Part shown: piece after piece, positions 1 to 32,689 of the stretch
Position numbering within the stretch: the first letter of the stretch is position 1
How the letters are laid out: each line of letters begins with the position of its first letter
DNA from: Eutreptiella sp. 'Long Island Sound 2002'
Taxonomy: Eukaryota; Protista; Euglenida
NCBI GenBank assembly: GCA_964036045.1
Contig: OZ038378.1
Coordinates: 140,926,001-140,990,000, forward strand
Direction: 5' to 3'
Length of the DNA: 64,000 nt
Program-made: the position numbers and the translations under genes
The notes under the pieces: model-generated
What the model saw: only the letters and a program-made list of their open reading frames with translations
Told to the model about the DNA's origin: nothing
The model's database searches: none

Positions 1-1100
1 GCAACTCATGCAATGTACTGTCCCTGCCTGGAGGCAGTGGGCAGTGGAACTCCTGCAATACACTGCCTCACTGCCTGGGGGCAGCGGGCAGTGCAACTCC
101 TGCAATGCACTGCCTCACTTCCTGGGGACAGTGGGCAGTGGAACTCGTGCAATGCACTGCCTCATTGCCCTGGGGCAGTGGGCAGTGGAACCCCTGCAAC
201 GCACTGCCCCAGTGCCTGGGGGCAGTGGGCAGTGGACCCCTGCAATACACTGCCCCACTGCCTTGGGGCAGTGGGCATTGTAACTCCTGCAATGCACTGC
301 CTCACTGCCTGGGGGCAGTGCAACTCATGCAATGCACTGCCTCACTGCCTGGAGGCAGTTGGCAGGGCAACTCCTGCAATGCACTGCCTCACTGCCTGGG
401 GGCAGCGGGCAGTGCAACTCCTGCAATGCACTGCCTCACTGCCTGGGGGCAGTGGGCAGTGGACCTCCTGCAATACACTGCCGCACTGCCCTGGGGGCAG
501 TGGGCAGTGCAATTCCTGCATTACTCTGCCCCACTGCCTGGGGGCAGTGGGCAGTGGAACCCCTGCAACGCACTGCCCACTGCCCTGGGGGCAGTGGGCA
601 GTGCAACTCCTGCCATACACTGCCTCACTGCCTGGGGGCAGTGGGCAGTGGAACTTCTGCAATGCACTGCCTCACTGCCCTGGGGCAGTGGCCAGTGGAA
701 CTCCCGCAATACACTGCCGCACTTCCTGGGGGCAGAGGGCAGTGGAACTCCTGCAATACACTGCCGCACTGCCTGGGGGCAGTGGGCAGTGGAACTCCTG
801 CAATACACTGCCGCACTGCCTGGGGGCAGTGGAACCCTTGCAACGCACTGCCCCACTGCCTGGGGACAGTGGGCAGTGGACCCCCTGCAATACACTGCCG
901 CACTACCTGGGGGCAGTGGGCAGTGTAACTCCTGCAATGCACTGCCTCACTGCCTGGGGGCAGTGGGCAGTGCAACTCCTGCAATGCACTGCCTCACTGC
1001 CTGGAGGCAGTTGGCAGGGCAACTCCTGCAATGCACTGCCTCACTGCCTGGGGGCAGCGGGCAGTGCTACTCCTGCAATACACTACCGCACTGCCTGGGG
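1..1100. repeat. 47-bp hairpin satellite, block 1 (runs off the window start)
   Basis: Tandem unit approx. GGGGGCAGTGGGCAGTGCAACTCCTGCAATGCACTGCCTCACTGCCT; the two halves of the unit are imperfect reverse complements. Confidence 0.95.
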
Positions 1101-1772: not shown

Positions 1773-2572
1773 ACAGTGCAACTCCTGCAATCCACTGCCT
1801 CACTGCCTGGGGGCGGTGGGCAGTGCAACTCCTGCAATGCACTGCCTCACTGCCCGGGGGCAGTGGGCAGTGCAACTCCTGCAATGCACCGCCTCACTGC
1901 CCTGGGGCAGTGGGCTGTGCAACTCCTGCAATGCACCGCCTCACTGCCCTGCGGCAGTGGACGGCGCAACTCCCGCAATGCACCGCCTCACTGCCTGGGG
2001 GCAGTGGGCAGTGCAACTCCTGCAATACACTGCCTCACTGCCCTGGGGCAGTGGGCAGTGGAACTCCTGCAATGCACTGCCTCACTGCCTGGGGGCAGTG
2101 GACAGTGCAACTCCTGCAATGCACTGTCTCACTGCCCTGGGACGGTGGGCAGTGTAACTTCTGCAATGCACTGTCTCACTGCCCCGGGGCAGTGGGCAGT
2201 GCAACTCCTGCAATGCACTACCTCACTGCCTGGGGGCAGTGGGCAGTGGAACTCCTGCAATGCACTGCCCCACTGCCTGGGGGCAGTGGGCAGTGGAACC
2301 CCTGCAAGGCACGGCCTCACCGCCTTGGGGGCAGTGGGCAGTGCAACTCCTGCAACGCACTGCCTCGCTGCCTGGGGGCAGTGGGCAGTGCAACTCCTGC
2401 AATGCACTGCCTCGCTGCCTGGGGGTAGTGGGCAGTGCAACTTCTGCAATGCACTGCCTCACTGCCCTGGGGCAGTTGGCAGTGGAACTCCTGCAATGCA
2501 CTGCCTCGCTGCCTGGGGGCAGTGGACAGTGCAACTTTGGCAATGCACTGCCCACTGCCCCAGGGCAGTGAG
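1765..2572. repeat. 47-bp hairpin satellite, block 2
   Basis: Same unit as 1-1100; joins the LINE-B fragment through a GGGCAGT microhomology near 1765. Confidence 0.95.
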
Positions 2573-2616
2573 GTGTGGTGTGGTGTGGTGTGGTATGGTG
2601 TGGTGTGGTGTGGTGT
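2572..2616. repeat. (GTGTG)n tract
   Basis: Direct reading. Confidence 0.95.
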
Positions 2617-3429
2617 GGAGGAGGAGGAGGAGGAGGAGCGCCTGCCGTGGTCCCACGTACGGTGAGCCGTGGCGTCGTCCCTGGGGGGCCCCACGCAGGC
2701 TCTGCCGAGGGAGTCCTCCGTCTTACCTCCGCTAGAGTAAGATGAATCTCGTCGCACACCTGAGAACGCCCCTCCCAGCAGGCCGTCTGGGTCTAAGCAC
2801 CGGTGTACGACCACGCTACGGTCTGATCAGCTCTCCGGTCCCGGCCACCGACTGCCCCGATCTGTCCTGGATCCACCCGAGTCAGCGTTCCAAGATCAAC
2901 GTGAGCTGAGAAGGTGTGGGTCTCCCGGGGCCTCACCCCCGACTTGAAAACGTCGCCGGGCTAAATAGAACGCGGCCCAGCACGACTATGCGCACTGCCG
3001 GTGGGCTGAGTACCGCCGGCGTCGCGAGTACGGTCACGCCACACGATCACGCGCACCCCCGGTGGCCTGGGTACCCCCGGGTTATGTGAGTGCGGGACGT
3101 GCGTCACGGCCATAGCACCACGGTGGTGCACCGCCGTGGAGGTCACCGACGACGCCCGGCCGCAAAGGCCGGGCCCAAACGACAAGCCCCACGATACGTG
3201 TACCGAGACGGCACGTGACCGAGAAAATGGCACCACGATGGTGCCCGAGCGAGACGGCGACGTTCGTCAATGGCACGTGAGGCGGTGAGTACCGCCGATG
3301 ACACGTCACCTCTGCACGGGGTGTCACGGAGCTTGGCGGAGCGCCAGGTGCAGACCTCGCCATGGTGCCTCGTGTATCGGCCTGGAGGATACACCATGGC
3401 CAGGCTGGCGCACGAAGACCGTCTGGGCA

Positions 3430-3804
3430 GCACCACGGTGGCGCTCTGCCCTGAAGGTTGCGCCACGACGGCGCATGCGGACGTTGACTGCACCACGGCG
3501 GCGCCATGTCACTGAACTGGCGCCACGTCGGCGCAAGGCTGTCTGGGCAGCGCCGCGGTGGCGCTCTGCCCTGAGGATTGCGCCACGGTTTCGCACGGCC
3601 CTAGAGGAGGCGCAGCACTGGCATACCCGTACGTCAGCTGCGCCACGATGGCGCACGTGCACGCTGGCGGCACCACGATGGCGCTTCGCCACTGGACTGG
3701 CGCCACGGCGGCGTAGGGCTGTCTGGGCAGCGCCACGATGGCGCCCTGCCCCGAAGATCGTGCCACAGCGGCGCACGTATTCGTCGGCGGCACCACGGTG
3801 GTAC
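3430..3804. repeat. 30-bp-period array: 15-nt palindrome GCGCCACGRTGGCGC plus 15-nt spacer, 13 units
   Basis: Palindrome variants start at 3430, 3460, 3490 and so on to 3790 in exact register; spacers recur with a four-unit (120-bp) period. Confidence 0.9.
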
Positions 3805-4004
3805 CCTGCCAGTGAGCCGGCGCGTGAAGGGGGAGCGTGGGTGAGCCTGGGCGGCTGGGGGGCCCTGTCCCTCACGGCACAGCACCGTTCTCCCTCGGGG
3901 GGTGCCCTCGGGGGGTGGCAGGGGTGGGCCCTGGGCTGACGCGGGTGAGCGAGCGAGCGAGTGAGTGAGTGGGTGAGTGAGTGAGTGAGTGAGTAAACAC
4001 GTGG

Positions 4005-4084
4005 CCGTTGCCTGGCTGTGCTTGTGGGCAACCCGTCCCACAGCTACCATCCTGGGGTTTTTTATCCTGGTGCCAGGCCACCAG
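4005..4084 (-). ncRNA. Structured 5' leader (partner copy 1)
   Basis: Minus strand CTGGTG-GCCTGG-CACCAG hairpin, A-rich linker, CCAGG, then a TGTGGG/CCCACA stem; homologous to 14638-14716. Confidence 0.6.
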
Positions 4085-4197
4085 ATATCGAGCAGGTGCA
4101 CTGTGTGTGGCAGCGGTGCATCTGCCCCTCACAGGCTGCACCTCTGGCCCAGGGAGGAGTCCTGGACGGGTGGCGGGCGGGGTGGGCCCGGCCTGAC
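4085..4197 (-). mobile_element. Fragment of the interior of the copy-2 partner subfamily
   Basis: Matches ~16320-16400 (GTGCATCTG...GGCCCAGGGAGG...GGGTGGGCCCGGCCTGAC). Confidence 0.75.
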
Positions 4198-4318
4198 GAG
4201 GTGGTGTGGTGTGATGTGGTGTGGTGCGGTGCGGTGCAGTGCGGTGCGGTGCGGTGCGGTGAGGTGCGGTGCGGTGTGGTGTGGTGAGGTGCGGTGCGGT
4301 GCGGTGCGGTGTGGTGTG
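4198..4318. repeat. (GTGTG/GTGCG)n tract
   Basis: Direct reading. Confidence 0.95.
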
Positions 4319-5220
4319 CCGAAGGCGCTGTTACCAAAAGGCAAAGGCCGGGATGTCTACCCACGGGTACAGGTAAACGGGCTGGGCTGTGTGTGTTGTG
4401 TGCGCGCTGTGTGTAAGTGTGTTGTGGCATGGCCGGACCAGTGCACTCTCGCACTTGGCCGACACTGCCTTGCCGACGCCTGCGCGCAGTCACACAGGGT
4501 CTCATTTGCCCACTGCACCCTGCGTGCCGCGCTGCACAACCAGTGCCTTCTGTGTGGTGCCGCACTGCTTGGTGCTCTGCACCACACTGCACTGTGTGTG
4601 CCCTGCTGCACTGTTGCCGTGGGCAGGGGGCAGTGGGCAGTGGAACTCCTGCAATGCACTGCCGCACTGCCTGGGGGCATTGGGCAGTGGACCTCCTGCA
4701 ATGCACTGCCCCACTGCCTGGGGGCAGTGGGTAGTGGACCTCCTGCAATCCACTGCCTGACTGCCCGGGGGCAGTGGGCAGTGCAACTCCTGCAATACAC
4801 TGCCCCACTGCCTTGGGGCAGTGGGCAGTGGACCTCCTTCAATACACCGCCTCACTGCCTGGGGGCAGTGGGCAGTGGACCTCCTGCAATACACTGCCGC
4901 ACTGCCTGGGGGCAGTGGGCAGTGGACCTCCTTCAATGCACTGCTCCACTGCCTGGGGGCAGTAGGCAGTGGACCTCCCGCAACACACTGCCTCACTGCC
5001 TGGGGGCAGTGGGCAGTGGACTACCTCCTGCAATACACTGCCCCACTGCCTGGGGGCAGTGGGCAGTGCAACTCCTGCAATACACGGCCGCATTGCCTGG
5101 GGGCAGTGGGCAGTGCAACTCCTGCAATGCATTGCCTCACTGCCCTCGGGCAGTAGGCAGTGGAACTCCTGCAATACACTGCCTCACTGCCTGGGGGCAG
5201 TGGGTAGTGCAACTCCTGGT
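4319..5220 (-). mobile_element. Putative satellite-carrying non-autonomous element with a LINE-B 3' tail
   Basis: 4319-~4420 is nearly identical to the LINE-B tail at 1179-1285. About 200 bp of CACTGC-rich sequence follows and grades into the 47-bp satellite, and pentamer tracts lie on both sides. Confidence 0.6.
4625..5220. repeat. 47-bp hairpin satellite, block 3
   Basis: Same unit as blocks 1 and 2. Confidence 0.95.
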
Positions 5221-5235
5221 GGTGTGGTGTGGTGT

Positions 5236-5645
5236 GGAGGAGGAGGAGGAGGAGGAGCGCCTGCCGCGGTCCCACGTACGGTGAGCCTTGGCGTCGTCCC
5301 TCGGGGGCCAAACGCAGGCTCTGCCGAGGGAGTCCTCCGTTTTACCTCCGCTAGAGCAAGACGAATCTCGTCGCACACCTGAGAACGCTCCTCCCAGCAG
5401 GCCGTCTGGGTCACAACGTCAGTGTACGACAACGCTACGGCTCGATCTGCTCTCCGGTCCCGGCCACCAACCGCTCCGAACTGTCCTGGATCCACCCGAG
5501 TAAGCGTTCCAAGATCAACGTGCACGGAAGATGTGGGTCTCCCGGGGCATCACCTCCGACTTAGAACGCCGCCAGACAAGGAGCGCGGTCCGGCACGACT
5601 GCGCGCAGCACCGGAACGGTCCGGGCGCGGGAGGTCGAGGACGGG
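5236..5645 (-). other. LINE-A 3' UTR/tail with a stem-loop and (CCT)n terminus
   Basis: Follows the ORF2 TGA and is conserved in 2617-~3000 and 14966-~15350. The sense strand has a TCCCTCGG/CCGAGGGA stem shortly before the tail. Confidence 0.85.
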
Positions 5646-8600
5646 TCACGGGCGGGGATAGGGCCACGGGGCGGGCCGACCCATGGCCACCTGCATGTCC
5701 TTAAAGACCGTGCGGGGTCCTTGGGAAGCCGCAGTGAGGATGGCCGAGAACGCAGAATGTAGTGCGGCACACCACGAGGGGGTCACATCTCCACAGAGGC
5801 CGGCTTCCAGGCTCCGTCCATTGCCACCGTAATGGATGGCCCAGAGGCGGCGTCGACCTGGGAGATGAGGGGCAAGCCCGTGCCGTCCGAGACTGTCCAA
5901 GATGATGACGTCATGGGGATTCTGCTCCACCTCCTGCCACATGGTCGGCGGAATCTGGTTCGACCCGTTGTACACATACAGGACACGGTACGGACTGTGC
6001 TTGCTCCGGGTGGAGATGACGGACTTCACCTTAGGGGCCAGGAGGAGGTCCCCTGATAGCCAGAGTCCTAGGAGGATGTCCCAGGCCGGCCACCTGCCCG
6101 AGCCGGGCGTTGGGGCCCAGTTGGCTACGTGATACCACTCTGGCGGTGGGTCGTTGGCGAGGGACTGGTTAACGGGGGCCCGCGGTAGGGGAGAGAGGTG
6201 GTCGGCAAGAGGTAGAACGGGCACCGCGTGCCGCTTATGTAGGAGAACGGTAGTGAGAACGACATCGCAGAGTAGGCGACGGAGACGCGCAGGACGCAGA
6301 CCTCTGTGCAGCAGGGCATCCCTGTGTGGCGTGGAGATGGCTCCGAGACGACCAACAGTGTAGGTTGCGATGGTGTGGTGGGCCGGGGAGCCATCCACAG
6401 CCAGTATGAACGGCTCGTCCCCCCAAAGGACGAGGGTGCCCCAAGCAGTGGGCGTACAGTGGCGCCAGGCATGGCACCTCTGAGAGAGTCGGGCCGCCAG
6501 CCACCGATGGTAGTGGGCGCGGATGAGCGGGTCTAGCGGGCACGAGAGGATATGGTCCCCGGAGGCGGGCATGGTGCAGAGGGGGCAGGACGTATCTCTC
6601 GGGGGGAACAGGGAGAGGCGGATGCCGGTGACCGTGAGGTGGTCCCCCCACGTGATGAGACCGTGGCTGACGATGTTGGCGTACTCGTTGAGGTCGGGGA
6701 GGTGTTGTGGCGGGGGGGACGCAGAGAAGGCGTGGTGGGAGGCGAGCAAGGCGCGGCGCGCGTGGGGCACGGCGTCGTGGACCTGGAGGCCCGCGTGGGA
6801 GAAGCAGACGCGGGGTTTCTGTAGGGGGCCGAGCCATCCCACGGCGTCCGGGCAATTGTCCGCAGCTTGCCCTGCCGCTTCGTCCACCCGGTCCAGCAGG
6901 GTATCGAGCCAGGTGCCGGCGATATGGGAATAGAGGTGATGGGGAGGGGCATGACCGTGGGCCATGTCGCGACACGATCTTATGAGATCTCCCTGCAGCG
7001 AGTCTTCCGGCTCGCGGCGCCCTTCCTGCGCCGTGATGTACCCTTTGCAGTCCGCGAAGTGCCACGCACCGGATCGGAAGCCGATGGCAGGGTCGGCTGA
7101 GGGCCCCTTGGCGGTGAGGGCCACCCACGCCGTGTACAGCTCCGCCGTGTAGGCGTTGTCCAGCCTCAAGGGGATGGGGACGGGGTACACCTGGTACCGG
7201 AGGGTGACGGGGCAGAACACCGCCACTGCCCCGCCGCAGCGCCGGGTCTTCGGGCACCACGACGCGTCGTGGAGGATCCCATAGTTCTCAGGGAGCCAGG
7301 AGAACGTGGGGACGGTCGCAGTCACCGCTTGGCAGCGTCTAACCGGGGGGACGGTGCCGACCGGCGGAGTGGGGCGGGGCGAGGCCCGGGGCCACCCCTT
7401 GCGTCGCGCGTCCTCTGTACTGCGACGGCCCGCAAGCATCCACGCGTGGGTGTCCTGGACCTCGAGTCCGGGTGACGACAGGGCCAGCACATGGGGGGTG
7501 TGGTGTGGCAGATGGCTGTCAGGGGGTAAGTGGATGGCGATGTCGCACCGGTGGCACAGGGCAACAAATAGATCGTGGTCTGTGGGGTGTGCGGTGCACC
7601 GGAGTCCGAGCTCCGGGGTGAGGCAGGGCTGGGAAGGATGGAACCGCCAGAGGGCAGTGAGGAGCCCGTGGCGCGTGGACCGGCAGACCAGGGAGTTGGG
7701 GTGGTTCAGGTGTCGGATGTAGACGCCGAAGAAGTTAGTAAACCCAACGACCGGTGCCGGGGGTATACCGACTCCCCCTTCGGGGACCTCACGGAGGAAG
7801 TGAGCAGAGGCGGAGAGGGTCCACCCAGCGGTGGCGCGCATGGCCGAGGCGGTCATGGCGTCCAGCACGCGCAGGGCCCCGTAGGAGGGGGGGCGGACAC
7901 TGGTAAACCAGTTGACCGTCCCATGACACTTGGCAGTATACATGGCGAGGGGGTAGTGGGCGGGGAGTCGTGGGGCGCGGAGCGCCCGGCACGCAGCGCG
8001 GGCGCCCGAGAACAGGCGCCGGGAGTCGACGGGATGGAAGAGGTGGGGAAGGGCATGGCGGCCAAGGACGCGGACGTAGTCCTGGCTCGTGGCACATCGC
8101 ACGGGGTGACCATTGAGGTATACCGTGTCGTTGAGGAAATAGACCTGACCATCGCGCATGTCGGTGCCGATCAAGACCGTTTTTGTTGGGTCTGGGTGGA
8201 GGTTGGTGAGGCGGCCCGCTCTCTCAATGCCGCTGGCGAGGGCGGGCAAATGGCAACGGTCGCCTGGCAGCCACTGGGTGTCATCCATCAGGAGAACCCG
8301 GTTCAGCGGGCCCGCGGGGGTGTCGGTGGGGGGGATGGAACGGCAGGCTTCGTGCCCCCGAACTTCGCCATATATGCAGTACTTCATGCCGGACACGGGG
8401 CATCCTTGCCCCGTGCCGGCCCCCAGCCGGGTGGAGGACGGAGAGCGTCCGTCAGCTCCCCCCATGTGCACCTCAAGGGCGCGGTCATGGTGCTGAAGGG
8501 TCGCGGCGTCGGTCGGGGAGATCCCTGCGGCGGTGAGGACGGCGTACTCGGTGGTGTGGTTGATTGAGCCATAGGCGTGGCGGACATCGTCCGACAGGAC

Positions 8601-10940
8601 CCACGCTTCAAGGCGTCTGCGCCAGCGGTCCCACCATACATCGTGTAGGACGCGGAGTAGCTCCACGGAGGAGCAGTGCGGGGACATCCCGAACTGGTAG
8701 GGCGGCAGGATGCCGTTCTGAACCAGGCGGGGTTGGTAGTGGTCTTTGATGAGGGCAGCCGTGAGCTTCCATATCGTGGCCAGATTGGTCAGCGGTCTGC
8801 CGTTCGCAATGGGGCCGTGCGGCGTCTTTTTCGGAAGGTTGATGAAGTCTGCAGAGTGTGCCTGGGGCACGGGCACCCCACGGAGAATACTGTTGATCAG
8901 GCTCACGATCGCCGCAAACTGGGCATCCTCCAATTGTCCGAACAGCCGGTACTCCAGTAAGTCGTGGTACGGCACAGTGGCCGCCGCCCGGCGGATGATG
9001 GCCCGCAGGTTTGCGGTGGTGGCGTTGGGTGGTGGGCCGAGCGGTCTTTCCTCCCATCCCGTGATGGTCCGGACGCGCGCGAGTGAGAGCGCCTCAAGAG
9101 GGGCAAGGTGCCTTTGGCGCAGCTGGTCCAACGCAACTGCGGCTTGTTGATGAAGAGGTACTGGGACGCCCACCACGTAGACCGGATCCGCTGGGGGTAC
9201 GTAGCGCGCCCCCAACGTGCGGCGGTAGTCCACTTTGGTGGGTTGGCCAGGGGCAGCGGGTAGGGGCGCCAGCCCTACATCCTTCTCCAGAAGGAGAACG
9301 TCCCAGGCCGCTCGGATGCGTTCTTTGAGGCGGGCGACCTCCACGAGGTGTGACGATTGGGACGCCCAATCCGGGTAGGCGAGCGTGTAGCGTTGAAGGT
9401 TGGTGACGTGGACACGTACCGTCGACGGTACCGGCTGGCTGGGGACGGGGGGCCCGTAGGCAGCCGTAGCCGCGGTGTATAGCGCTGAGGTCACCTCGGT
9501 ATAGCGTGGCTGCGCTTCGGGCGCGCCTGGGGGCGGCGCAGCGAGTTCGGCCTGAAAGGTGTCGTTGAGGGTGCGGAGCTGGCTGGCGAGGGGCTCCCGC
9601 GGGATGGGGAAGCGGCCCTTTTTCGAAGGGCATACCAATTGGGGCGCTGGCGGGAGGTCATGGAGGGTGGCAGTCACGGGTAGGTGGTCAGATGGGAAAC
9701 TGGAATCGGAGCGCACCTCCGTGGTGTGGGCTGCTTCCGAAGGGGCGCGGAGGAAGATGTGGTCCAGGGCACCGGCGAAACCTTGCGGGCTCACCCACGT
9801 GGGGGCCTCCGCAAGGGGGCGTAGACGGCGCATCCCAAGGCGCGTGAGCGTGGGGAGGACGAGGTCACAGAGGGAGGCAGGGGAGACAGGGAGGTGCGAG
9901 ACCCAGCGGCAGTTGGCGTTCAGGTCCCCTGTCAGGACAACCACTCTAGCCGGGGTGAGGAGGAGGTACGGGTACACCCAATCCAGGACTTCTTGGAGCG
10001 TGTCGAGGTTCCCGTCGGCGGGGAGATACACGTTGGCGTGGCAGTGGGTCACGCCAGCCATGGTGAAGTGCGTGACGAGGGCTCGTCCCGACGGGTGGGC
10101 GCTGTGGCCGGTCACGACCAGGTCCGGGGTCCTGTAGAGGAGGGTGGCACATCCCCCAGCTATTCTTGCAGGTGCCTGGATGGTGTGGTACAGGGGGTGC
10201 ACCCGTTGGATGATCTGGGGCCCCGCTTCTTGAACATGCAGGGTTAGCGGGTACTGGCACTCGCGCACCAGGACGTCCAGGGCGCGGAGCTTGGGTCGCA
10301 GGGACATCTGCACGTTGAGGGTCATCACGTCTGGGCGGGGCGACACGTGGCCGGTGGGGGGGGGACCAGGGCAGGAGCTGGCGACGGTGGAGTGCTGGGT
10401 TAGCTTGCGGTCCACGGCTGCGGGGAGGGCGCAAGGTAGGCCTCGCACCCACTTGCGGAGGTGCCGGTGGTGGTACGTGGCCGCCATCGCCAAGACACTG
10501 GCCCGGGTGAGGCCTGTGGCTGTGATGGAGACGCGGCTGTGTAGGGATTGTGGGAGGACCACGTGGTGATGCTCGGGCAAGATGAAGGAGGTGGGTGGCA
10601 GGCCTTTGCGGCAGAGCTGCAACTGATGGGAGCCCGTCACCTGCACACAGTGCACGGCGCCCACTAACGACAGAACGTTACGGGGCCAGGGGTCCGCCCC
10701 GCTGCACGCCCGGTAGTAGTGCACACCCACCGGCAGGTGCAGGCACATTTCGAGGGCATAGGGGGGCGTGATGAACTGGGCAGTGCCCGAGGCCGGTACC
10801 GGTACCAGGCCCCACTCTCTGGGGGGGGAGCTGGGAGTGTATGCGCCCAGGTGCAGGTCCCGGACATGGGGGACGCCGTCGAGGTGGGAGTGGCGGAGCT
10901 GAGACACGGCGGCAGGGATGTCCTCGTTGCGCCCCGCCAT
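5646..10940 (-). CDS. LINE ORF2 (1764 aa): unknown N-domain, APE endonuclease, reverse transcriptase, RNase H, CCHC finger, unknown C-domain
   Basis: APE (~10331-9663): TLNV, HVQE, ANVYLP, LTGDLNA, ALDHIF, SDHLPV. RT (~9000-8040): GRPLTNL, YQFGM, LSDDVRHAYGSI, GTGQGCPVS, LLMDD. RNase H (~7285-6860): LHDAS, TAEL, FADC, YSHI, RVDEAA. Finger (6587-6540): CPLC-x7-H-x3-C. Confidence 0.95.
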   Translation of the reverse strand: MAGRNEDIPAAVSQLRHSHLDGVPHVRDLHLGAYTPSSPPREWGLVPVPASGTAQFITPPYALEMCLHLPVGVHYYRACSGADPWPRNVLSLVGAVHCVQVTGSHQLQLCRKGLPPTSFILPEHHHVVLPQSLHSRVSITATGLTRASVLAMAATYHHRHLRKWVRGLPCALPAAVDRKLTQHSTVASSCPGPPPTGHVSPRPDVMTLNVQMSLRPKLRALDVLVRECQYPLTLHVQEAGPQIIQRVHPLYHTIQAPARIAGGCATLLYRTPDLVVTGHSAHPSGRALVTHFTMAGVTHCHANVYLPADGNLDTLQEVLDWVYPYLLLTPARVVVLTGDLNANCRWVSHLPVSPASLCDLVLPTLTRLGMRRLRPLAEAPTWVSPQGFAGALDHIFLRAPSEAAHTTEVRSDSSFPSDHLPVTATLHDLPPAPQLVCPSKKGRFPIPREPLASQLRTLNDTFQAELAAPPPGAPEAQPRYTEVTSALYTAATAAYGPPVPSQPVPSTVRVHVTNLQRYTLAYPDWASQSSHLVEVARLKERIRAAWDVLLLEKDVGLAPLPAAPGQPTKVDYRRTLGARYVPPADPVYVVGVPVPLHQQAAVALDQLRQRHLAPLEALSLARVRTITGWEERPLGPPPNATTANLRAIIRRAAATVPYHDLLEYRLFGQLEDAQFAAIVSLINSILRGVPVPQAHSADFINLPKKTPHGPIANGRPLTNLATIWKLTAALIKDHYQPRLVQNGILPPYQFGMSPHCSSVELLRVLHDVWWDRWRRRLEAWVLSDDVRHAYGSINHTTEYAVLTAAGISPTDAATLQHHDRALEVHMGGADGRSPSSTRLGAGTGQGCPVSGMKYCIYGEVRGHEACRSIPPTDTPAGPLNRVLLMDDTQWLPGDRCHLPALASGIERAGRLTNLHPDPTKTVLIGTDMRDGQVYFLNDTVYLNGHPVRCATSQDYVRVLGRHALPHLFHPVDSRRLFSGARAACRALRAPRLPAHYPLAMYTAKCHGTVNWFTSVRPPSYGALRVLDAMTASAMRATAGWTLSASAHFLREVPEGGVGIPPAPVVGFTNFFGVYIRHLNHPNSLVCRSTRHGLLTALWRFHPSQPCLTPELGLRCTAHPTDHDLFVALCHRCDIAIHLPPDSHLPHHTPHVLALSSPGLEVQDTHAWMLAGRRSTEDARRKGWPRASPRPTPPVGTVPPVRRCQAVTATVPTFSWLPENYGILHDASWCPKTRRCGGAVAVFCPVTLRYQVYPVPIPLRLDNAYTAELYTAWVALTAKGPSADPAIGFRSGAWHFADCKGYITAQEGRREPEDSLQGDLIRSCRDMAHGHAPPHHLYSHIAGTWLDTLLDRVDEAAGQAADNCPDAVGWLGPLQKPRVCFSHAGLQVHDAVPHARRALLASHHAFSASPPPQHLPDLNEYANIVSHGLITWGDHLTVTGIRLSLFPPRDTSCPLCTMPASGDHILSCPLDPLIRAHYHRWLAARLSQRCHAWRHCTPTAWGTLVLWGDEPFILAVDGSPAHHTIATYTVGRLGAISTPHRDALLHRGLRPARLRRLLCDVVLTTVLLHKRHAVPVLPLADHLSPLPRAPVNQSLANDPPPEWYHVANWAPTPGSGRWPAWDILLGLWLSGDLLLAPKVKSVISTRSKHSPYRVLYVYNGSNQIPPTMWQEVEQNPHDVIILDSLGRHGLAPHLPGRRRLWAIHYGGNGRSLEAGLCGDVTPSWCAALHSAFSAILTAASQGPRTVFKDMQVAMGRPAPWPYPRP

Positions 10941-10948
10941 GTCCCGGG

Positions 10949-13948
10949 TTACCGGTCCCGCGGACGCCGACCGAAGTACGGCTGGTAGCGGTGGGGGTCG
11001 GCTGGGGGGCTCCAGGGCGGGGGAGCGTAGGGGTTGTGGGCCATGGCCACTCGGGGGTCGTGGGGGTCCCCCGAGTACGGGTAGGGCAGGAGAGGGGCTG
11101 CTGCATGGTGGTCGTGGCGGCTGGAAAGCGCTTGTGGCTCATCGCGGTACGCGCTGCGACGCCTCGGCGGCGGGCTGTCGCGGCGATGGCCTGGGCTGCG
11201 GCGGCGGGACGGGGACCGGTCCGAGCGGCGGGGGCTGTACCTGCGCTGATATTTGGAGTCTGGTTCTCCGTCCGATCCCGACGTTGCCGTAAGGTCCACC
11301 TGATCCTCAGGGTCCCGTGGACGGCGCTGCTTCCCGCGGCTTCCCCGATGAGTCTTCCGGGGCGGACGGTCTCGGTCTCGGTCAGGGTCAGGCACCCAGG
11401 GCGTAAACGGTTGTTTCTTCGATTCGGCCCACGTCACTCGCCAGCCACGAGCCGTGTGTTGCCTCGTCAGTCGCATGCCGCGCTCGTACTCCGCTGGTCG
11501 GATTCCGACGATTGTGAACTTGGATGTATGGTTCAATTGTTCTTCAGTAATAGAGGAAAGGCCTGCACCAAATTTATCCCGAAGGATACCACCGAGGAGT
11601 CCTGCATCAACTTCACCGGACGGCGGATCGTCGACTTCTTGCCAGCCGACCCACAGGGCTTTCGAGTAGACTTGCGGATCGATTTTTTGGGGTGTATACC
11701 CCTTCTTTTTCGCTGCGCCCTGTGCCTGGTTGGCGGCTGCAGCTTCTGATGGGGAGGTGGCTGGGCTGGCGGAAACCTGCTGGACTGCAGGGGGGTTGGA
11801 GAGGAAGGAGCGCAGGACTTCCGCGATGCCGGGCAGGCTGGGCGCGTGGCTGTGGACCCAGGCCCACTGCTCCCGGATCGGCGACTGCGGGAGGGTGTCG
11901 ACCTTCGCGCCGTACTGGCGGAAGAGCTGGAGGTGGAGCGCGTGCGCAACCTCGTCCTCACAGCCCTTGGGGATCCCCGGGATCCACTCCAGCAGGTCGG
12001 TCAGGGCGGCATCGGCAGGCGACGGCAGAGACGGCGTCGGCTGGGCGGTCGCGCCCGGTGCCCGAAAGGCAGAGACCGCCCTCGGCTTAGGGATCGGTTC
12101 CGGGACTGCGAACGACAGTTCGGGCGCACGCGCAGGGGCCTCCGGGACCGGCACGGCGCCTGGCGCGGCCATAGCCCTACGGAGGACGTCGGCCAACTCC
12201 TCGAGGTTGGGTGCCTGGGGCGAGGTGAGAACTGCTGCGGCGAGGATGACCGGCACGAGGACCAGGAACTGCTGAGAGCCGGGGGGGGGCAGCTCGAATG
12301 AAGCCGGAACGGTACTGCGCACGGCGTTGGCGAATGCCGGCGGCGTGGACTGGAGGCCGTGGAGTCTGGTGGCGATGGACAGGAGGGGGGGTACCGACCT
12401 GATGAAGTTGTTGAGCCTGACGGCTTCGGTCTGCCGCTGTGCCGCGGCGCAACGCTGGGCCTGCTGCTGGGCATTATCCCGTTCGGTGCGCATCACGTCC
12501 AGGTCCCGCGCGAGGGACTCCAGGTCGCCCCGTGCCACGGCCAGCTCCCGTCGTTGGGCCTCATACTCGTCATGCAATTGAGCGTAGTCGGTGGAGTAGG
12601 CCGTGACATCCAGGTCCGGGACAAAAGGCTCCCCCACCTGGGAGGGGCTGGGGGGGGCCGACCCGACGGCCGGGGCCGGTGACTCCGGAGGCGTGGGGTC
12701 TGCGGCAGCCGGTGGTACCTGGGAGGCAGGCTCTGGGAGATTGAAAGAAAGCCTTGTCTGTTCGGGCAACAGTGATGAAGGCGATGGTTCGGACCCTGAG
12801 GGGGTGGGCTTGCCCTGGGCCTTGTACAGGGCTGACGCTGGGGTGAACGCCGCCGTGGCGAACAGAGTGCCGGCGGGGCTGGGCGCCGATTGTCCTTTGG
12901 TGAGGTAAGGTGCGTGGCTGGGCGGCGTGAGCGGGGGCGGGTTGGCGGTGTCGGCGATGCCGGCCTGCAGCAGGGCGAAAGTGGGGGCTGTGGCCCAGGA
13001 GTGCTCACCAGCCTGCTCGATCTGATGCAGCAGCTCCACGCTGCGGATCGGCAAGATCGAGCACTCGAGCAGCGGCCGCAGCTGTTCGGGGGTCCACATG
13101 CCCTTGTTGGCGAGGGCGGGGGGTGTGGGAACGGGGGCTGGCGTGTACTGTCCTGTGAGGCAGACGGAGGAGGCCCACGCTAGGAGCCCGAACTTCAGCG
13201 GGACGAGGTCTGCTGTCGGGATGTGGGCTGCCTGCAGGACCGCATGCACGTCGTTGGGTAGCGCCCAAAAGGCCGCAACTACCTCTCGGGTGCGGAGGCG
13301 GTCCCATGACGGTCTGAGGTGGGGGGCAAGGAACTGGCTGATGGGCTTGTGGATCTTGTGGGAGACCTTCTGGCTTTGGATGTCCGGAGGGCCGGCAGTG
13401 TCGACGGGCGGTGGCTGTTCGCGGGCTGTGTACAGGCCCTTGAAGACTTGGTTGCGGAGGCGTGACGCCGAAATTGGGGCATGGCTTGGGCTCCACCGCG
13501 TGACGAGAGCCGCTGTGAGGGCCTCAGGGTCCTTGGAGATATACTCCAGCAGTGGGCCTCCTTGTACCAGCGACAGGGGGACGTGCTCGATGACCTTCGT
13601 GTCAGACGGGCCTGCGGCGACCGTTACGGTGGCTGTGAGCAGGAGCCCCCGCGGCGTCCACACCCCCGTCACCGCTGTAATAGCCTGGATGTCGCCGTTG
13701 GCAGCCGTCCACCGCAGGGCATCACACAAGTCAGCCAGGGCGGGGTCGGTGGCCTGGATAGCCGTATCTGCCGCTTCCAGTGCGTCATCCTTCAGCATGT
13801 CCAGTTCTCGCAGCAGACGGTCAGCATCGTCGGACTGGGCGATGTCCATCAGAAACATGGGGAACGGCCCCTGACGAATGGCGCCGCCTCGACCGGTGTC
13901 GGGGGCGGGAGAGGGGGTGTCCTGGGACGGTGTTGAGCGGTCTGACAT
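10949..13948 (-). CDS. LINE ORF1 (~999 aa from the ATG at 13948): coiled coil, RRM-like domain, RS/RD-rich tail
   Basis: Open frame directly upstream of ORF2 with an 8-nt gap. Heptad-rich YAQLHDEYEAQRRELAVARGDLESLARDLDVMRTERD (~12600-12400); KALWVGW...ILRDKFG...KFTIVGI...WRVTWAE has RRM topology (~11670-11415); RRYSPRRSDRSPSRRRSP tail. The track starts the ORF at a TTG at 13990. Confidence 0.88.
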   Translation of the reverse strand: MSDRSTPSQDTPSPAPDTGRGGAIRQGPFPMFLMDIAQSDDADRLLRELDMLKDDALEAADTAIQATDPALADLCDALRWTAANGDIQAITAVTGVWTPRGLLLTATVTVAAGPSDTKVIEHVPLSLVQGGPLLEYISKDPEALTAALVTRWSPSHAPISASRLRNQVFKGLYTAREQPPPVDTAGPPDIQSQKVSHKIHKPISQFLAPHLRPSWDRLRTREVVAAFWALPNDVHAVLQAAHIPTADLVPLKFGLLAWASSVCLTGQYTPAPVPTPPALANKGMWTPEQLRPLLECSILPIRSVELLHQIEQAGEHSWATAPTFALLQAGIADTANPPPLTPPSHAPYLTKGQSAPSPAGTLFATAAFTPASALYKAQGKPTPSGSEPSPSSLLPEQTRLSFNLPEPASQVPPAAADPTPPESPAPAVGSAPPSPSQVGEPFVPDLDVTAYSTDYAQLHDEYEAQRRELAVARGDLESLARDLDVMRTERDNAQQQAQRCAAAQRQTEAVRLNNFIRSVPPLLSIATRLHGLQSTPPAFANAVRSTVPASFELPPPGSQQFLVLVPVILAAAVLTSPQAPNLEELADVLRRAMAAPGAVPVPEAPARAPELSFAVPEPIPKPRAVSAFRAPGATAQPTPSLPSPADAALTDLLEWIPGIPKGCEDEVAHALHLQLFRQYGAKVDTLPQSPIREQWAWVHSHAPSLPGIAEVLRSFLSNPPAVQQVSASPATSPSEAAAANQAQGAAKKKGYTPQKIDPQVYSKALWVGWQEVDDPPSGEVDAGLLGGILRDKFGAGLSSITEEQLNHTSKFTIVGIRPAEYERGMRLTRQHTARGWRVTWAESKKQPFTPWVPDPDRDRDRPPRKTHRGSRGKQRRPRDPEDQVDLTATSGSDGEPDSKYQRRYSPRRSDRSPSRRRSPGHRRDSPPPRRRSAYRDEPQALSSRHDHHAAAPLLPYPYSGDPHDPRVAMAHNPYAPPPWSPPADPHRYQPYFGRRPRDR

Positions 13949-14637
13949 GGTAGCTGTGGCGAGAAAAGAGCGGGTGGCCTGTGGCCGCAATATGTTGGGG
14001 GGGGGGAGCAGATCGAGGTGTCGGCAAACGGAGGTGCACTGACATCATAGGCAGCCCCAGTCGGATGGGGCGCGCAGGAGAGAAACAAGGGGTACCACGA
14101 GCGTGGCCATAGTGTGACAAAACAAAGAGCATGGCGCGATGGCGCGGAGTAACATGGGGCCGCCTGGCGGACCGGGTCGGTGAGCGGGGGTCCCAGGACA
14201 CACAGGGCGGGGATGCGAGGGGAGCACCGCACTGGCGCGTGGTGCTGCAACCCTAGTGGCGCACGGGAGCGAGGGGCCCCACGTTGGGACGACGAATCGG
14301 ACGACTGATGATACCCCTGCACAAGGCGTCACGCTTGAGCGGCGGATACGTCGAATGCAGTCCCCGTCGCGGCTCCCCGCGTAGCGGCCTGGAAGATTGC
14401 CACGGCGAGGTCGACGTCTTGCCAGAGACGAACGTATAACGACGTGCCCACTGTGAGCAGGAAACGGCTTGCAAGGGGGAGGGACGCACTTGAGGTGCGG
14501 CACTCAGCCCTTGGAGACACGGGACGAAGAGGGAGAGAGAGAGTGCACCATACGGGTGGAGCTGAGCGGAGAGGGGGCCACGATGGCAGAGCTGAGTCAC
14601 GTGGTGGCACGACTATCACGACGATTCACGATTGGTG

Positions 14638-14716
14638 TCGAGCGTGGCAGTGCGTGTAGGCAATCCGTCCTACAGCTACCATCCTGAGGGTTTTTAGACT
14701 GGTGCCAGGTCACCAG
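14638..14716 (-). ncRNA. Structured 5' leader of LINE-A
   Basis: Sense CTGGTGACCTGGCACCAGTCTAAAAACCCTCAGGATGGTAGCTGTAGGACGGATTGCCTACACGCACTGCCACGCTCGA; four copies in the window, with one compensatory base-pair change. Confidence 0.6.
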
Positions 14717-14965
14717 TGGTGTGGTGTGGTGTGGTGTGGTGTGATGCGGTGAGGTGCGGTGTAGTGGGGTGCGGTGCGGTGCGGTGAGGTGCGGTGCGGT
14801 GCGGTGCGGTGTGGTGCTGTGTGGTGCGGTGCGGTGCGGTGCGGTGCGGTGCGGTGCGGTGCGGTGCGGTGAGGTGCGGTGCGGTGCGGTGCGGTGCGGT
14901 GGGGTGGGGTGGGGTGGGGTGGGGTGGGGTGTGGTGCGGTGCGGTGCGGTGCGTTGCGGTGCGGT
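14717..14965. repeat. Mixed (GTGTG/GTGCG/GTGGG)n tract
   Basis: Direct reading. Confidence 0.95.
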
Positions 14966-15782
14966 GGAGGAGGAGGAGGAGGAGGAGGAGGAGCGCCTGC
15001 CGTGGTCCCACGTACGGTGAGCCGTGGCGTCGTCCCTCGGGGGCCCCACGCAGGCTCTGCCGAGGGGGTCCTCCGTCTTACCTCCGCTAGAGTAAGACGA
15101 ATCTCGTCGCACACCTGAGAACGCTCCTCCCAGCAGGCCGTCTGGGTCACAGCGTCGGTGTACGACAACGCTACGGTCCGATCTGCTCTCCGGTCCCGGC
15201 CACCGACTGCCCCGAACTGTCCTGGATCCACCCGAGTCAGCGTTCCAAGATCAACGTGAGCGGAAGATGTGGGTCTCCCGGGGCATCACCCCCGACTTGA
15301 AAGCGGCGCCGGGCTAAATAGAACGCGGCCCAGCACGACTATGCGCATTGCCGGCGGGCTGAGTACCGCCGGCGTCGCGAGTACGGTCACGCTACACGAT
15401 CACGCGCACCGCCGGTGGCCTGGGTACCCCCGGGTTCTGTGAGTGCGGGACGTGCGTCATTGCCATAGCACCACGGTGGTGCACCGCCGTGGAGGTCACC
15501 GAGGACGCCCGGCCGCAAAGGCCGGGCCCAAACGACGAGCCCTACGATACGCGCACTGAGACGGTACGTGACCGAGAAAGTGGCACCACGATGGCGCCTG
15601 AGCGAGACGACGACGTTCGCCGATGGCACGTGAGGCGGTGAGTACCGCCGATGACACGTCACCTCTGCACGGGGTGTCACGGAGCTTGGCGGAGCGCCAG
15701 GTGCAGACCTCGCCATGGTGCCTCGAGTATTGGCCTGGAGGACACACCATGGCCAGGCTGGCGCACGAAGACTGTTTGGGCT

Positions 15783-16292
15783 GCGCCACGGTGGCGCTCT
15801 GCCCTGAAGGTTGCGCCACAACGGCGCACGTGTACGTTGACCGCACCACGGTGGTGCCACGTCACTGAACTGGCGCCACGTCGGCGCAGGGCTGTCTGGG
15901 CAGCGCCGCGGTGGCGTTCTGCCGTGAGGATTGCGCCATGATGGCGCACGTGTACGTTGGCGGCACCACGATGGCGCTCTGCCACTGAACTGGCGCCACG
16001 GAGGCATGGGGCTGTCCGGGCAGTGCCACGACGGCGCTGTGCCCCGAACACTGCGCCACGGTAGCTGCACCACAGTGGTGTGCTGCCACGGAAGTGGCGC
16101 CACGTTGGCGCTGGACTGTTTGGGCGGCGCCACGGCGGCGCTCTGCCAAGAAGGCCGTGCCACGACGGCGCTCTGCCCAGAAGGCCGCGCCACGACGGCG
16201 CACGGGTACGTTCGCGGCGCCACGATGGTGCCCTGCCATTGAGCCCGCGCCATGTCGGCGCAGAGCTATCGGGGCAGGCGCCACGTTGGCGT
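15783..16292. repeat. 30-bp-period hairpin/spacer array, ~18 units
   Basis: Units at 15783 through 16053 every 30 bp, a 16-bp deletion, then 16067 through 16247 every 30 bp, and one more at 16278. Confidence 0.9.
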
Positions 16293-16444
16293 CTGGCGGT
16301 CGGGGGGAGGCCACGTATGTGCATCTGTCCCCCACAGGACTGCATGTCTGGCCCAGGGAGGGGTCCTGGACGGTTGGCGGGCGGGGTGGGCCCGGCCTGA
16401 CACAGGGAAGACGCACGAGAAATCGAGACGTATCACGACTGGCT

Positions 16445-16523
16445 TCGAGCGTGGCAATGCGTGTGGGCAATCCGTCCCACAGCTACCATCCTGAGGGTTT
16501 TTAGACTGGTGCCAGTTCACCAG
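16445..16523 (-). ncRNA. Structured 5' leader (partner copy 2)
   Basis: Homologous to 14638-14716. Confidence 0.6.
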
Positions 16524-16849
16524 AGGTGCGGTGGGGTGCGGTGCGGTGCGGTGCGGTGCGGTGCGGTGCGGTGGGGTGCGGTGCGGTGGGGTGGGGTGGG
16601 GTGGGTTGTGGTGTGGTGTGGTGCGGTGCGGTGCGGTGCGGTGGGGTGCGGTGCGGTGCGGTGGGGTGGGGTGGGGTGGGGTGGGGTGGTGTGGGGTGTG
16701 GTGTGGTGTGGTGCGGTGCGGTGCGGTGGGGTGTGGTGCGGTGCGGTGCGGTGCGGTGCGGTGCGGTGCGGTGGGGTGTGGTGCGGTGCGGTGCGGTGCG
16801 GTGTGGTGCGGTGTGGTGCGGTGCGGTGCGGTGCGGTGCGGTGCGGCGC
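16524..16849. repeat. Mixed pentamer tract
   Basis: Direct reading. Confidence 0.95.
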
Positions 16850-17176
16850 GGCGCACGGGTACGTTCGCGGCGCCACGATGGTGCCCTGCCATTGAGCCCG
16901 CGCCATGTCGGCGCAGAGCTGTCGGGGCAGGCGCCACGTTGGCGTCTGGCGGTCGGGGGGAGGCCACGTATGTGCATCTGTCCCCCACAGGACTGCATGT
17001 CTGGCCCAGGGAGGGGTCCTGGACGGTTGGCGGGCGGGGTGGGCCCGGCCTGACACAGGGAAGACGCACGAGAAATCGAGACGTATCACGACTGGCTTCG
17101 AGCGTGGCAATGCGTGTGGGCAATCCGTCCCACAGCTACCATCCTGAGGGTTTTTAGACTGGTGCCAGGTCACCAG
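16850..17176 (-). mobile_element. Duplicate of the 5' ~327 bp of partner copy 2
   Basis: Near-identical to 16197-16523 (offset 653 bp); lacks a 3' tail. Confidence 0.9.
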
Positions 17177-17426
17177 AGGTGCGGTGGGGTGCGGTGCGGT
17201 GCGGTGCGGTGTGGTGCGGTGCGCTGGGTTGTGGTGTGGTGTGGTGTGGTGTGGTGTGGTGTGGTGTGGTGTGGTGTGGTGTGGTGTGGTGTGGTGTGGT
17301 GTGGTGTGGTGTGGTGTGGTGTGGTGTGGTGTGGTGTGGTGTGGTGTGGTGTGGTGTGGTGTGGTGTGGTGTGGTGTGGTGTGGTGTGGTGTGGTGTGGT
17401 GTGGTGTGGTGTGGTGTGGTGTGGTG
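17177..17426. repeat. Long (GTGTG)n tract
   Basis: About 40 near-perfect GTGTG units after a short mixed stretch. Confidence 0.97.
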
Positions 17427-31244: not shown

Positions 31245-31385
31245 CCTAGGATTAGAGCTTGGGCTAGGGTTAGGGTTAGGGTGAGGGCTAGGGTTCGGGT
31301 TAGAATTAGGGCTAGGGGTAGGTGTAGGTGTAGGGTGAGGACTAGCCTGAGGGTTGGGGTGGGTTTTAGGGCTAGGGTTGGATTG
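31245..31385 (+). repeat. Degenerate interstitial (TTAGGG)-like hexamer tract
   Basis: GGGCTAGGGTTAGGGTTAGGGTGAGGGCTAGGGTTCGGGTTAG... Confidence 0.75.
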
Positions 31386-32689
31386 TGTTGGGGTGCAAAG
31401 GGAGGAAATTTTCTGTTGTGCACATTTGGTGCCCATGGAGCGTCGGTCGCCTTTGGTGCCCATGGACACCTAAGTGCGGCACCTTTGGCAACTAACTGTT
31501 GGACGGAGGCCTCCTTGGGGGGGGTGTTGGCGTCCTAGGACCTGCGGAGCACTACCCCCCCCCCGTGCCCCTGGGTTTTCAATAGGCATAAGACCTATAG
31601 CTCACGCGCTCCGGATTTCGTTTGCCGGGTGCAATTCCATGCCTCCTAACTCGGCCGCGCTGGCACCCTTCGCGGGGGCGAGGGTGATGCTGTGTGTAAT
31701 GTCGCGTTATGGTTGTTGTTCTATTGTGTTCGCATCACGGGGGGGGGGGATTTACAATCGGTCCGGATGCGACGCGCCCTAGGCTATCTGTCGTAACTTG
31801 CGGGGAAAGGGGGGGTTGGCGGGATGGTGGGGGGGTATTGGTAGCTCAGCCGGGGGGGGTCCCGGGGGGGGGGCGGGCTACACACGACCCCCTACTACCA
31901 CATGCATACCTCAAGGGTGTGTGTGTGTGTCTGGGGGCATGGGGGTGTAGAAGTATGTAGGATGGAGTGCGCTGCCCAGATGACCCGACTGCGCCGCTAC
32001 CCTTGCTACTATGGTGGGCTGCGGTGTACGGCGACTCCCGGGTTCTATGGCTCTGGCATCACAGAGGGGTTCCAGAGGGGAATGGCTGGATACGTGGATG
32101 ATGTTGTATGACCAACCGTAACGGTCTGTGGAATGCCGAGTGTTCTCCGTCTGGTGGATGCGGCGGCGGAGATAGCATATGAGACGTGGCTTCCTACTGG
32201 CCTTTGCGTGTGGCAGCGGCCGACGTGATATGACGGCCATTGCGACGTGGCAGGTCGTGCCGGCCTAATAGTGCACGGTACCGCCCCCGCAAGCACGGTT
32301 CGGCCGACGAGTGGCTACGCCCGCCTGCCCCGGTCGTCTCGACCAGGGTAATAAGGGCCAAACCCCAGTAGGGTATTCCCATGGCACCGGGGTCTCTATT
32401 GGCGACCTAGCTACGGCAGTCACGGGGGTTACTCCGGGGGGTTAAGTGAATACATACATGTCCCCATGCTAGCGCGACTGGTGTTGACCACGGGCTGCGG
32501 GGAGTGGCCTGATAGGTCGGGCTGCGTGTGGAGTCATAGCAGCATGGATGGCCACAAGGGATATGCGAAGGTGCTACAAGTCGATGATTAATTGCGACTG
32601 GAAAAGGACGTGGGCGTGGACGTCTGAGACGGACATTGAGGGTTGGACGGGTCTGCATGTATGAGGTTTGGCAGCGGGGGGGTGCCCCT

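Follow-up and report, generated by a model that had tools for sequence, protein, structure and literature searches.

Elements of the SVA and LAVA type in hominoids are non-coding and non-autonomous, and are mobilised in trans by a LINE (long interspersed nuclear element). They carry a central GC-rich minisatellite of 30–50-bp units whose number differs by copy and subfamily, and they are present in hundreds to thousands of young copies. Mouse L1 elements (types A, Tf and Gf) repeat a segment of the LINE 5' untranslated region (5' UTR) in head-to-tail copies that sit immediately downstream of the 5' end, also in variable unit number, and mouse L1 promoter strength rises with monomer number. In trypanosomatids, which like euglenids belong to the Euglenozoa, ingi/RIME and L1Tc/NARTc each pair a LINE with a short non-coding partner; the two have the first ~80–110 nt and the 3' end in common, and their 5' ends are precise. 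Here we describe a system with structural likenesses to all of these from the euglenid Eutreptiella sp. 'Long Island Sound 2002', found in a window of 64,000 nt (the whole stretch of DNA analysed; assembly GCA_964036045.1, contig OZ038378.1, positions 140,926,001 to 140,990,000). The window contains an autonomous LINE and two short non-autonomous elements, partner 1 and partner 2, each with an array of palindromic motifs at a 30-bp period.

The array is very likely a palindromic higher-order minisatellite, derived from a LINE 5' UTR and housed in a LINE-dependent, non-coding euglenid retroposon. By analogy, its architecture appears closest to the variable number tandem repeat (VNTR) of SVA and to the mouse L1 5' monomers, and the pairing of autonomous and non-autonomous elements resembles ingi/RIME. 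The arms of the palindrome are more conserved than the intervening spacers, and selection on the arms while lineages propagate, followed by neutral decay once copies have inserted, is the probable cause.

Palindromic arrays in two LINE-dependent retroposons

All elements described here have the minus strand as their sense strand, as given by the LINE open reading frames (ORFs) for endonuclease and reverse transcriptase. We identified the following partner and array features in the window:

2618–4084, minus strand: partner 1, a non-autonomous retroposon of ~1468 nt, complete, from a very young sister subfamily
3430–3819, minus strand: array in partner 1, 13 units of 30 bp, with decayed cores in two of them (3580 and 3610)
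14972–16525, minus strand: partner 2, a complete 1554-nt non-autonomous retroposon consisting of a 5' leader (16427–16525), a private interior with the array, a LINE-type 3' UTR (14994–15390) and a (CCT)n tail (14972–14993)
15783–16292, minus strand: array in partner 2 (sense nt 234–743 of the element), four A-B-C-D cycles and one further A, 17–18 units of 30 bp altogether, interrupted by an out-of-register deletion of 16 bp near 16066 and by a 1-bp shift ahead of the last unit
15468–15597, minus strand: region of two isolated cores in partner 2 (15468 and 15583), with counterparts at 3115 and 3230 in partner 1
16849–16945, minus strand: partner fragment with the last three array units, within a 653-bp local duplication and joined to a (GGTGC)n microsatellite

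When both arrays are cut into rows of 30 bp, each unit consists of a 15-nt core, GCGCCACGNNGGCGC, and a further 15 nt. The cutting yields 13 units in partner 1 and 17–18 in partner 2, in agreement with an earlier note on this DNA that had placed two 30-bp-period arrays here. Tandem Repeats Finder reports periods of 30, 60 and 120 for the arrays. Allowing up to two mismatches, we count 48 cores in the window where 3.85 would be expected, a number reached by 0 of 100 shuffles. Almost all of these matches lie in the two arrays, in the fragment (16870–16945) and at the two isolated cores per partner. The earlier note had described a 15-nt palindrome in each unit; the core is present, but the palindrome arms extend over 5–6 bp (GCGCC[A] / [T]GGCGC) around a centre of 3–5 nt and do not take up the full 15 nt.

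The 15-nt spacers cycle through four types in the order A-B-C-D, as had been noted. Units of the same type are 0.79 identical in the core and 0.72 in the spacer, whereas units of different types are 0.73 identical in the core and 0.33 in the spacer, where chance gives 0.27. The array is a higher-order minisatellite of 4 x 30 = 120 bp with ordinary unit-number dynamics. Its unusual trait is that the four sub-units have the core in common and nothing else. Spacers D and A can form one stem (sense fold GGCAG..ACGCC/GGCGUGCC-like, z −1.9), which matches the earlier observation that two spacers extend the stem.

Genomic copies were sampled through the flank and not through the array, which gave 49 distinct full copies. 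Arrays of the 535-bp length class contain 18 units, ordered as (A-B-C-D)x4 with one more A; only the last is out of register, by 1 bp. The 519-bp class, to which partner 2 of the window belongs, is the 535-bp array minus 16 bp, lost in an out-of-register deletion. About half of the 49 copies have this deletion in common, and it is therefore a subfamily marker and not private damage. Both the deletion and the 1-bp shift reported in the earlier note are thus real, but the deletion is not particular to the second window copy. Other arrays measure 475 (−60) and 415 (−120) bp, and 240-bp blocks are reiterated at three loci.

Unit numbers also differ by subfamily, with 13 in the partner-1 subfamily, 18 in others, and 16 + 8 in two arrays in an older subfamily (L077, L079 and L080). 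The isolated core pairs of partners 1 and 2 are remnants of this second 30-bp array, which still has eight units in the older subfamily. The 30-bp register runs over 13 and 17–18 units in the window copies, but the proposed constancy of spacer length does not extend to diverged arrays (L091–L094). These keep the four types with the phase broken, and spacings in the more diverged arrays are 22, 29, 31, 49, 51, 71 and 82 bp. As in other minisatellites or VNTRs, units of 10–100 bp stand head to tail, vary in number by whole units and show higher-order similarity.

The array belongs to the non-autonomous partners of the LINE, as first described. Partners 1 and 2 are ~81% identical overall and 93% identical over 2568–3585. 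Partner 2 matches the LINE only at sense nt 3–113 (87%) and 1135–1554 (88%), and in the (CCT)n tail. In ~50 genomic copies, the element invariably starts at CTGGTGACC and stops in a (CCT)n tail whose length varies. Beyond these ends lie CA-rich pentamer microsatellites, a 47-bp satellite or unique DNA. Target-site duplications of 8 bp, which partly overlap the (CCT)n tail, were read only at two loci with unique flanks, L023 (CCTGAAGC) and L040 (CCTGGACC).

A partner-private 26-mer adjoining the array has 526 matches in the 2.28-Gb genome and a control has 0, which indicates ~500 copies, and sampled copies lie on at least 20 chromosome-scale contigs. With a LINE 3' end, no coding capacity, and dispersed copies that have defined ends and duplications, the partners have the properties of stringent-type LINE-dependent retroposons. 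Their 5' end is the LINE leader and not the tRNA, 7SL or 5S head of a canonical short interspersed nuclear element. An Rfam scan of the whole window found no family at threshold; a derivation of the 120-bp unit from a 120-nt small RNA such as 5S was rejected for want of an Rfam match.

The perfect 15-mer core occurs 620 times in 2.28 Gb (4 for a control), approximately the family copy number, and the motif is therefore private to this LINE/partner system. It is also found at a spacing of ~222–224 bp (C1:100889911-100890371 and C4:9494194-9494654), which hints at another repeat family or array type with the same core.

Partner copies also occur head to tail. At C11:48316249-48328359 and C20:21794474-21809427, copies ~90–92% identical to partner 2 follow each other with a ~1658-bp period, at least eight of them on C11, so that satellite-type amplification of the retroposon has also taken place.

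The elements of the window are surrounded by other repeats. A 47-bp satellite with CACTGCC/GGCAGTG motifs occupies window positions 1–1100, 1764–2570 and 4626–5218, where it flanks the LINE and partner 1, and it directly flanks many other partner copies (L002, L005, L010, L013, L021, L034, L045 and others). Together with CA-rich pentamer microsatellites, it appears to be a preferred insertion target. Partners and LINE sit in such pentamer microsatellites in the window (4203–4316, 14718–14966, 16525–16851 and 17178–17426) and elsewhere (L004, L008, L014, L016 and L024–L026). The pentamers read (CACCG)n, (CACCA)n, (CACTC)n, (CTCAC)n, (CTACA)n or (CCCAC)n on the sense strand, often with the same repeat on both sides. 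This pattern suggests that insertion of the element targets, or generates, pentamer microsatellites.

The neighbouring LINE and the origin of the array

The autonomous element lies between the two partners and comprises the following features:

5236–14716, minus strand: autonomous LINE with leader, 3' UTR and (CCT)n tail as in the partners, and no array
10949–13990, minus strand: LINE ORF1, 1013 aa, no Pfam match
5646–10940, minus strand: LINE ORF2, 1764 aa, with APE endonuclease and reverse transcriptase
14131–14589, minus strand: LINE 5' UTR segment alignable to the partner interior, with core-like motifs at 14131, 14224, 14276 and 14575

By eye, ORF1 has a coiled-coil stretch and a C-terminal tail rich in arginine and serine, and its sequence suggests an uncharacterised ORF1 type. 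A word-based protein search with the reverse transcriptase region retrieved near-identical LINE copies only and yielded no clade name.

That the window LINE lacks an array had been reported correctly. Its 5' UTR nevertheless contains related material. In alignment A1, nt 250–560 of the LINE 5' UTR match the partner interior at ~65–70% identity, and the 768-nt UTR contains four core-like motifs, a density above the 0.72 per kb of the ORFs (Poisson P = 0.0026). Another LINE copy, 94% identical and on a different contig, keeps one of these motifs and has no array. Because the partner interior aligns with the UTR and the UTR is enriched in core-like motifs, the array is very likely an amplified LINE 5' UTR motif for which the scattered UTR motifs are the likely source. 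The earlier description of the array as cargo does not suit an interior that is homologous to the LINE 5' UTR.

The arrays had also been called CRISPR-looking. Like CRISPR arrays, they alternate a short, partly palindromic repeat with intervening segments of equal length, and this visual likeness is the only point for a CRISPR-like adaptive array or another prokaryote-type spacer-acquisition system. The spacers are not unique; they are four recurring types in a fixed A-B-C-D order, with the same-type identity given above. No cas genes are present, the repeat is 15 nt instead of 23–47 nt, and the arrays reside in a nuclear retroposon with ~526 dispersed copies in a euglenid, next to ORFs for a LINE endonuclease and reverse transcriptase. 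Recurring spacers and copy number refute a CRISPR array, and we consider the chance of any such system negligible.

A metagenome scan for two cores 30 bp apart returned nine GC-rich, apparently bacterial contigs with 2–5 identical 30-bp repeats and no homology to the partner. Contigs of this kind with 4–6 identical tandem repeats and a similar GCGCCACG..GGCGC core include L089 (7395–7560), L090 (2920–3085), L082 (1360–1495) and L086 (2536–2640). These bacterial repeats are chance look-alikes.

Long minus-strand ORFs run across the arrays (partner 1, 235 aa; partner 2, 288 aa), which might favour a decapeptide repeat translated from the partner, RxRGA in one frame or AP.W in another. One minus-strand frame of the partner-1 array does read as RxRGA repeats, and the deletion in partner 2 does break that frame, both as previously noted. 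The two ORFs are in different frames, and the frameshifting 16-bp deletion is fixed in a subfamily, dividing two that are equally prolific. Two of the three sense frames are stop-free from composition alone (~70% GC, as read from the units). Pfam gave only sub-threshold, low-complexity matches for four long array ORFs. A word-based protein search with the 288-aa array ORF found only mechanical gene calls on ENA genome contigs and none from a transcriptome. A coding repeat was rejected on the grounds of frame, deletion and lack of a Pfam domain, and we regard it as highly improbable.

Evolution of the palindrome arms and spacers

Variants found in one copy only are equally common in arms and spacers among the 49 full copies (43 of 204 sites versus 61 of 255; P = 0.5), and post-insertion decay is therefore uniform. 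Variants shared among copies, which are mostly inherited from source elements, are approximately threefold fewer in arms (7 of 204 sites) than in spacers (29 of 255; P = 0.0015). The shared-variant rate of the arms is the lowest of any part of the element (0.034 versus 0.06–0.136 per site), below even the leader. A McDonald–Kreitman-like comparison gives an odds ratio of 0.33 (P = 0.006–0.026). In the partner-1 subfamily the same test has one shared variant in stems and none in spacers, as its copies are too young.

Diversity shows a similar pattern in a set of 121 distinct typed units that represent six or more array lineages. Within types, diversity is 0.13–0.20 in arms, 0.25–0.36 in centres (loops) and 0.31–0.33 in spacers. 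The difference between arms and spacers (P = 2e-5) persists at non-CpG sites and at G/C sites alone (P = 5e-4). CpG sites mutate faster in these arrays (79 transitions versus 22 transversions at CpG), which agrees with a report of heavy 5-methylcytosine (5mC) methylation in the Euglena genome (bioRxiv 10.64898/2026.05.21.726589). Because the arms are CpG-rich, the comparison of arms with spacers is conservative. The core types also keep their own signatures across lineages, with A3:T13 in all C-type cores and distinct centres in types B and D, and homogenisation among cores is therefore argued against. Together these observations indicate that the arms are probably under selection in propagating lineages and decay neutrally once inserted.

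A neutral minisatellite is nonetheless quite possible. Under this explanation, a GC-rich, hairpin-prone 120-bp unit grew by slippage, unequal exchange or template switching of the reverse transcriptase and is passively carried, the case that the earlier note had opposed to its own proposal. Changes in unit number by multiples of 30, 60, 120 and 240 bp, the fixation of an out-of-register deletion in a prolific subfamily, decayed cores within active subfamilies, phase breaks in older arrays and equal private mutation of stems and spacers all fit it. So do the lack of covariation and of extra hairpin stability described below, and the chance occurrence of similar cores in simple 30-bp tandem repeats of unrelated GC-rich bacteria. 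Arm conservation could itself have a neutral source, either concerted evolution among fourfold more templates or the choice of units. Neutrality does not account well for a stem shared-variant rate below that of the leader or for a halving of arm diversity that survives CpG and base-composition controls. The type-specific loop and position-3/13 signatures speak against homogenisation of cores across types, and cores that are 0.73 identical across types beside spacers at chance level are not what one 30-bp ancestor would yield by neutral divergence. The array is probably more than a passive passenger.

The earlier note had proposed that the partner RNA is a multi-hairpin scaffold, and our results do not support this. 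Within types, 584 of 726 cells are Watson–Crick paired versus 580.5 +/- 4 when the 3' letters are shuffled, so that no covariation is seen. The only covariation is the between-type A3:T13 pair, and the units that have it are not independent. Mismatches that would be G·U pairs on the sense RNA are not favoured over those that would be G·U on the other strand (67 versus 47 overall; 24 versus 20 for the four central pairs). A hand count of such mismatches in the majority sequence of the family leans to the antisense strand (6 versus 3). Positions 6 and 10 are not significantly associated (P = 0.47). Unit segments of 45 nt fold into the expected hairpin, but not better than shuffles (z −1.9 to +0.7). 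The minimum-energy fold of the whole array is one long fold-back instead of successive hairpins, and the two strands fold alike (z −4.0 sense, −4.3 antisense). The conserved feature is base identity (GCGCC-ACG-..-GGCG), which is strand-symmetric and fits sequence recognition, at the DNA or RNA level, better than pairing, though divergence is shallow.

RNA libraries in which the family was found are three estuary metatranscriptomes only. Their contigs are shallow, of unknown strand and could be DNA, and some run beyond the 5' boundary of the element. One run of unrecorded library type, which we read as DNA, has very high depth at the element ends and lower depth over the array, and is not informative on copy number.

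These results also bear on an RNA handle, in which cores act as short hairpins, or pair in trans with the motifs of the LINE 5' UTR, so that the array captures ORF1p/ORF2p or co-packages the partner with LINE RNA. Such a handle would give the partner an edge in trans-mobilisation. It could account for arm constraint confined to propagating lineages and for a motif that is private to the element family and present in the LINE 5' UTR too. C-type stems with a compensated A3:T13 in place of G3:C13, and a common A6·C10 state that equals G·U on the sense strand, would also suit it, as would the ORF1p coiled coil and arginine-rich tail, predicted features typical of nucleic-acid binders. Against it are the lack of within-type covariation, central-pair mismatches without sense bias and a majority sequence that leans to antisense. 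Unit hairpins no more stable than shuffles, a whole-array fold-back in which the strands are alike and the absence of an Rfam match also count against it. We consider an RNA handle unlikely.

Our favoured explanation is that the minisatellite arose from the LINE 5' UTR, resides in a non-autonomous retroposon and serves as a reiterated cis-element under selection, preferably as a promoter at the DNA level. We hold this whole package tentatively, at slightly less than an even chance. The non-coding partner (~1.5 kb) would be copied by the neighbouring LINE, from which it retains the first ~110 nt, the last ~420 nt and the (CCT)n tail, the parts required to define the 5' end and to be recognised by the reverse transcriptase. 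Its middle very likely descends from the LINE 5' UTR, whose GC-rich motif (GCGCCACG-NN-GGCGC), present as a few scattered copies in the LINE, has been multiplied 13–24 times. The motif would then be a cis-element that aids propagation of the partner, and reiteration would raise its dose. In the preferred mechanism, it would work at the level of the DNA copy, where each repeat unit would serve as an internal promoter or enhancer in the manner of the tandem 5' UTR monomers of mouse L1.

A role in DNA is slightly preferred over an RNA handle because conservation concerns base identity and not pairing, both strands show the same pattern, and the array stands in 5' UTR-derived sequence just downstream of the leader. 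Taken by itself, the DNA-level promoter mechanism is possible but doubtful, and an RNA handle for LINE proteins comes close to it in likelihood.

Several observations weigh against the favoured explanation. The clearest subfamily comparisons, partner 1 with partner 2 and partner 1 with L079, are without stem-specific conservation by hand count. Units for the diversity test were chosen partly by their cores, and core conservation may be somewhat overestimated as a result. In active subfamilies, decayed cores are tolerated, as are a range of 13–24 units and the 16-bp out-of-register deletion, and any requirement is therefore loose and dose-like. The contigs from RNA libraries are no proof that partners are transcribed from their own promoter. 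Finally, an element-private motif fits an element-encoded protein at least as well as a host transcription factor.

A related proposal, which we consider distinctly improbable, is that the element-private palindrome is a recognition code common to the LINE and its parasite, with few copies in the LINE 5' UTR and ~18-fold reiteration in the partner. If so, partner RNA would out-compete the LINE for ORF1p/ORF2p. Alternatively, palindromes might pair with palindromes of LINE RNA in trans, like a retroviral dimer-initiation site, so that the partner rides in the same particle. Either way, the code would be a new hitch-hiking mechanism for non-autonomous retroposons.

Other repeats and comparison with known systems

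Three further repeats in the window are separate from the retroposon system. Degenerate interstitial telomere repeats of the TTAGGG type occupy 31247–31379. A tandem array of ~7 units with 82/244-bp periodicity (32678–33267) and a 167-bp duplication at 98% identity (52813–53154) are both unrelated to the palindrome array. Elsewhere in the genome, the 25-nt Euglena gracilis spliced-leader (SL) sequence has more than 5000 exact dispersed matches on both strands (for example, C1:29492 and C1:113346) and 0 for a control, in line with a euglenid nuclear genome. This number far exceeds what would be expected from tandem clusters of SL-RNA genes only, and the matches may include retroposed SL-bearing copies.

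Mobile elements of euglenids are almost undescribed. In the E. gracilis assembly, LINEs make up only ~1.5% of the genome and one third of repeats are unclassified (PMC11252322). The locus described here provides a LINE/partner system in full, with a segment of the LINE 5' UTR amplified in the partner. Its motif carries a measurable signature of selection and offers a concrete, testable case of a non-autonomous element that boosts its own propagation. It is also a warning that a regular pattern of repeats and spacers in a eukaryote need not be CRISPR-like.

The Xist A-repeat and engineered MS2/PP7 hairpin arrays likewise reiterate a GC-rich, hairpin-capable core between less conserved linkers. 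Those arrays act as RNA and have demonstrated binders, whereas the array described here shows neither covariation nor strand bias.

RIME and NARTc differ from the partners in being simple internal-deletion or short derivatives of their LINEs, with no internal minisatellite and with A-rich tails in place of (CCT)n. Mouse L1 monomers are ~200 bp long and belong to an autonomous element. Here tandem units also lie near the 5' end, the array starting at sense nt 234 in sequence derived from a 5' UTR; however, they measure 30/120 bp, are palindromic and are amplified only in the non-autonomous partner, where a promoter role is putative.

SVA combines Alu-like, VNTR and SINE-R (HERV-K) pieces, ends in poly(A) and relies on relaxed recognition of the 3' end by L1. 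The modules of the partner are instead a LINE leader, a 5' UTR-derived array, a LINE 3' UTR and (CCT)n, and the likeness to SVA is architectural only. The partner thus has the ends of its own LINE, the leader and the 3' UTR with (CCT)n, as in stringent-type systems, and its 4 x 30-bp repeat with a palindromic core comes from the LINE 5' UTR, in a protist host. In these terms, the system is a protist counterpart to the VNTRs of SVA and the monomers of mouse L1.

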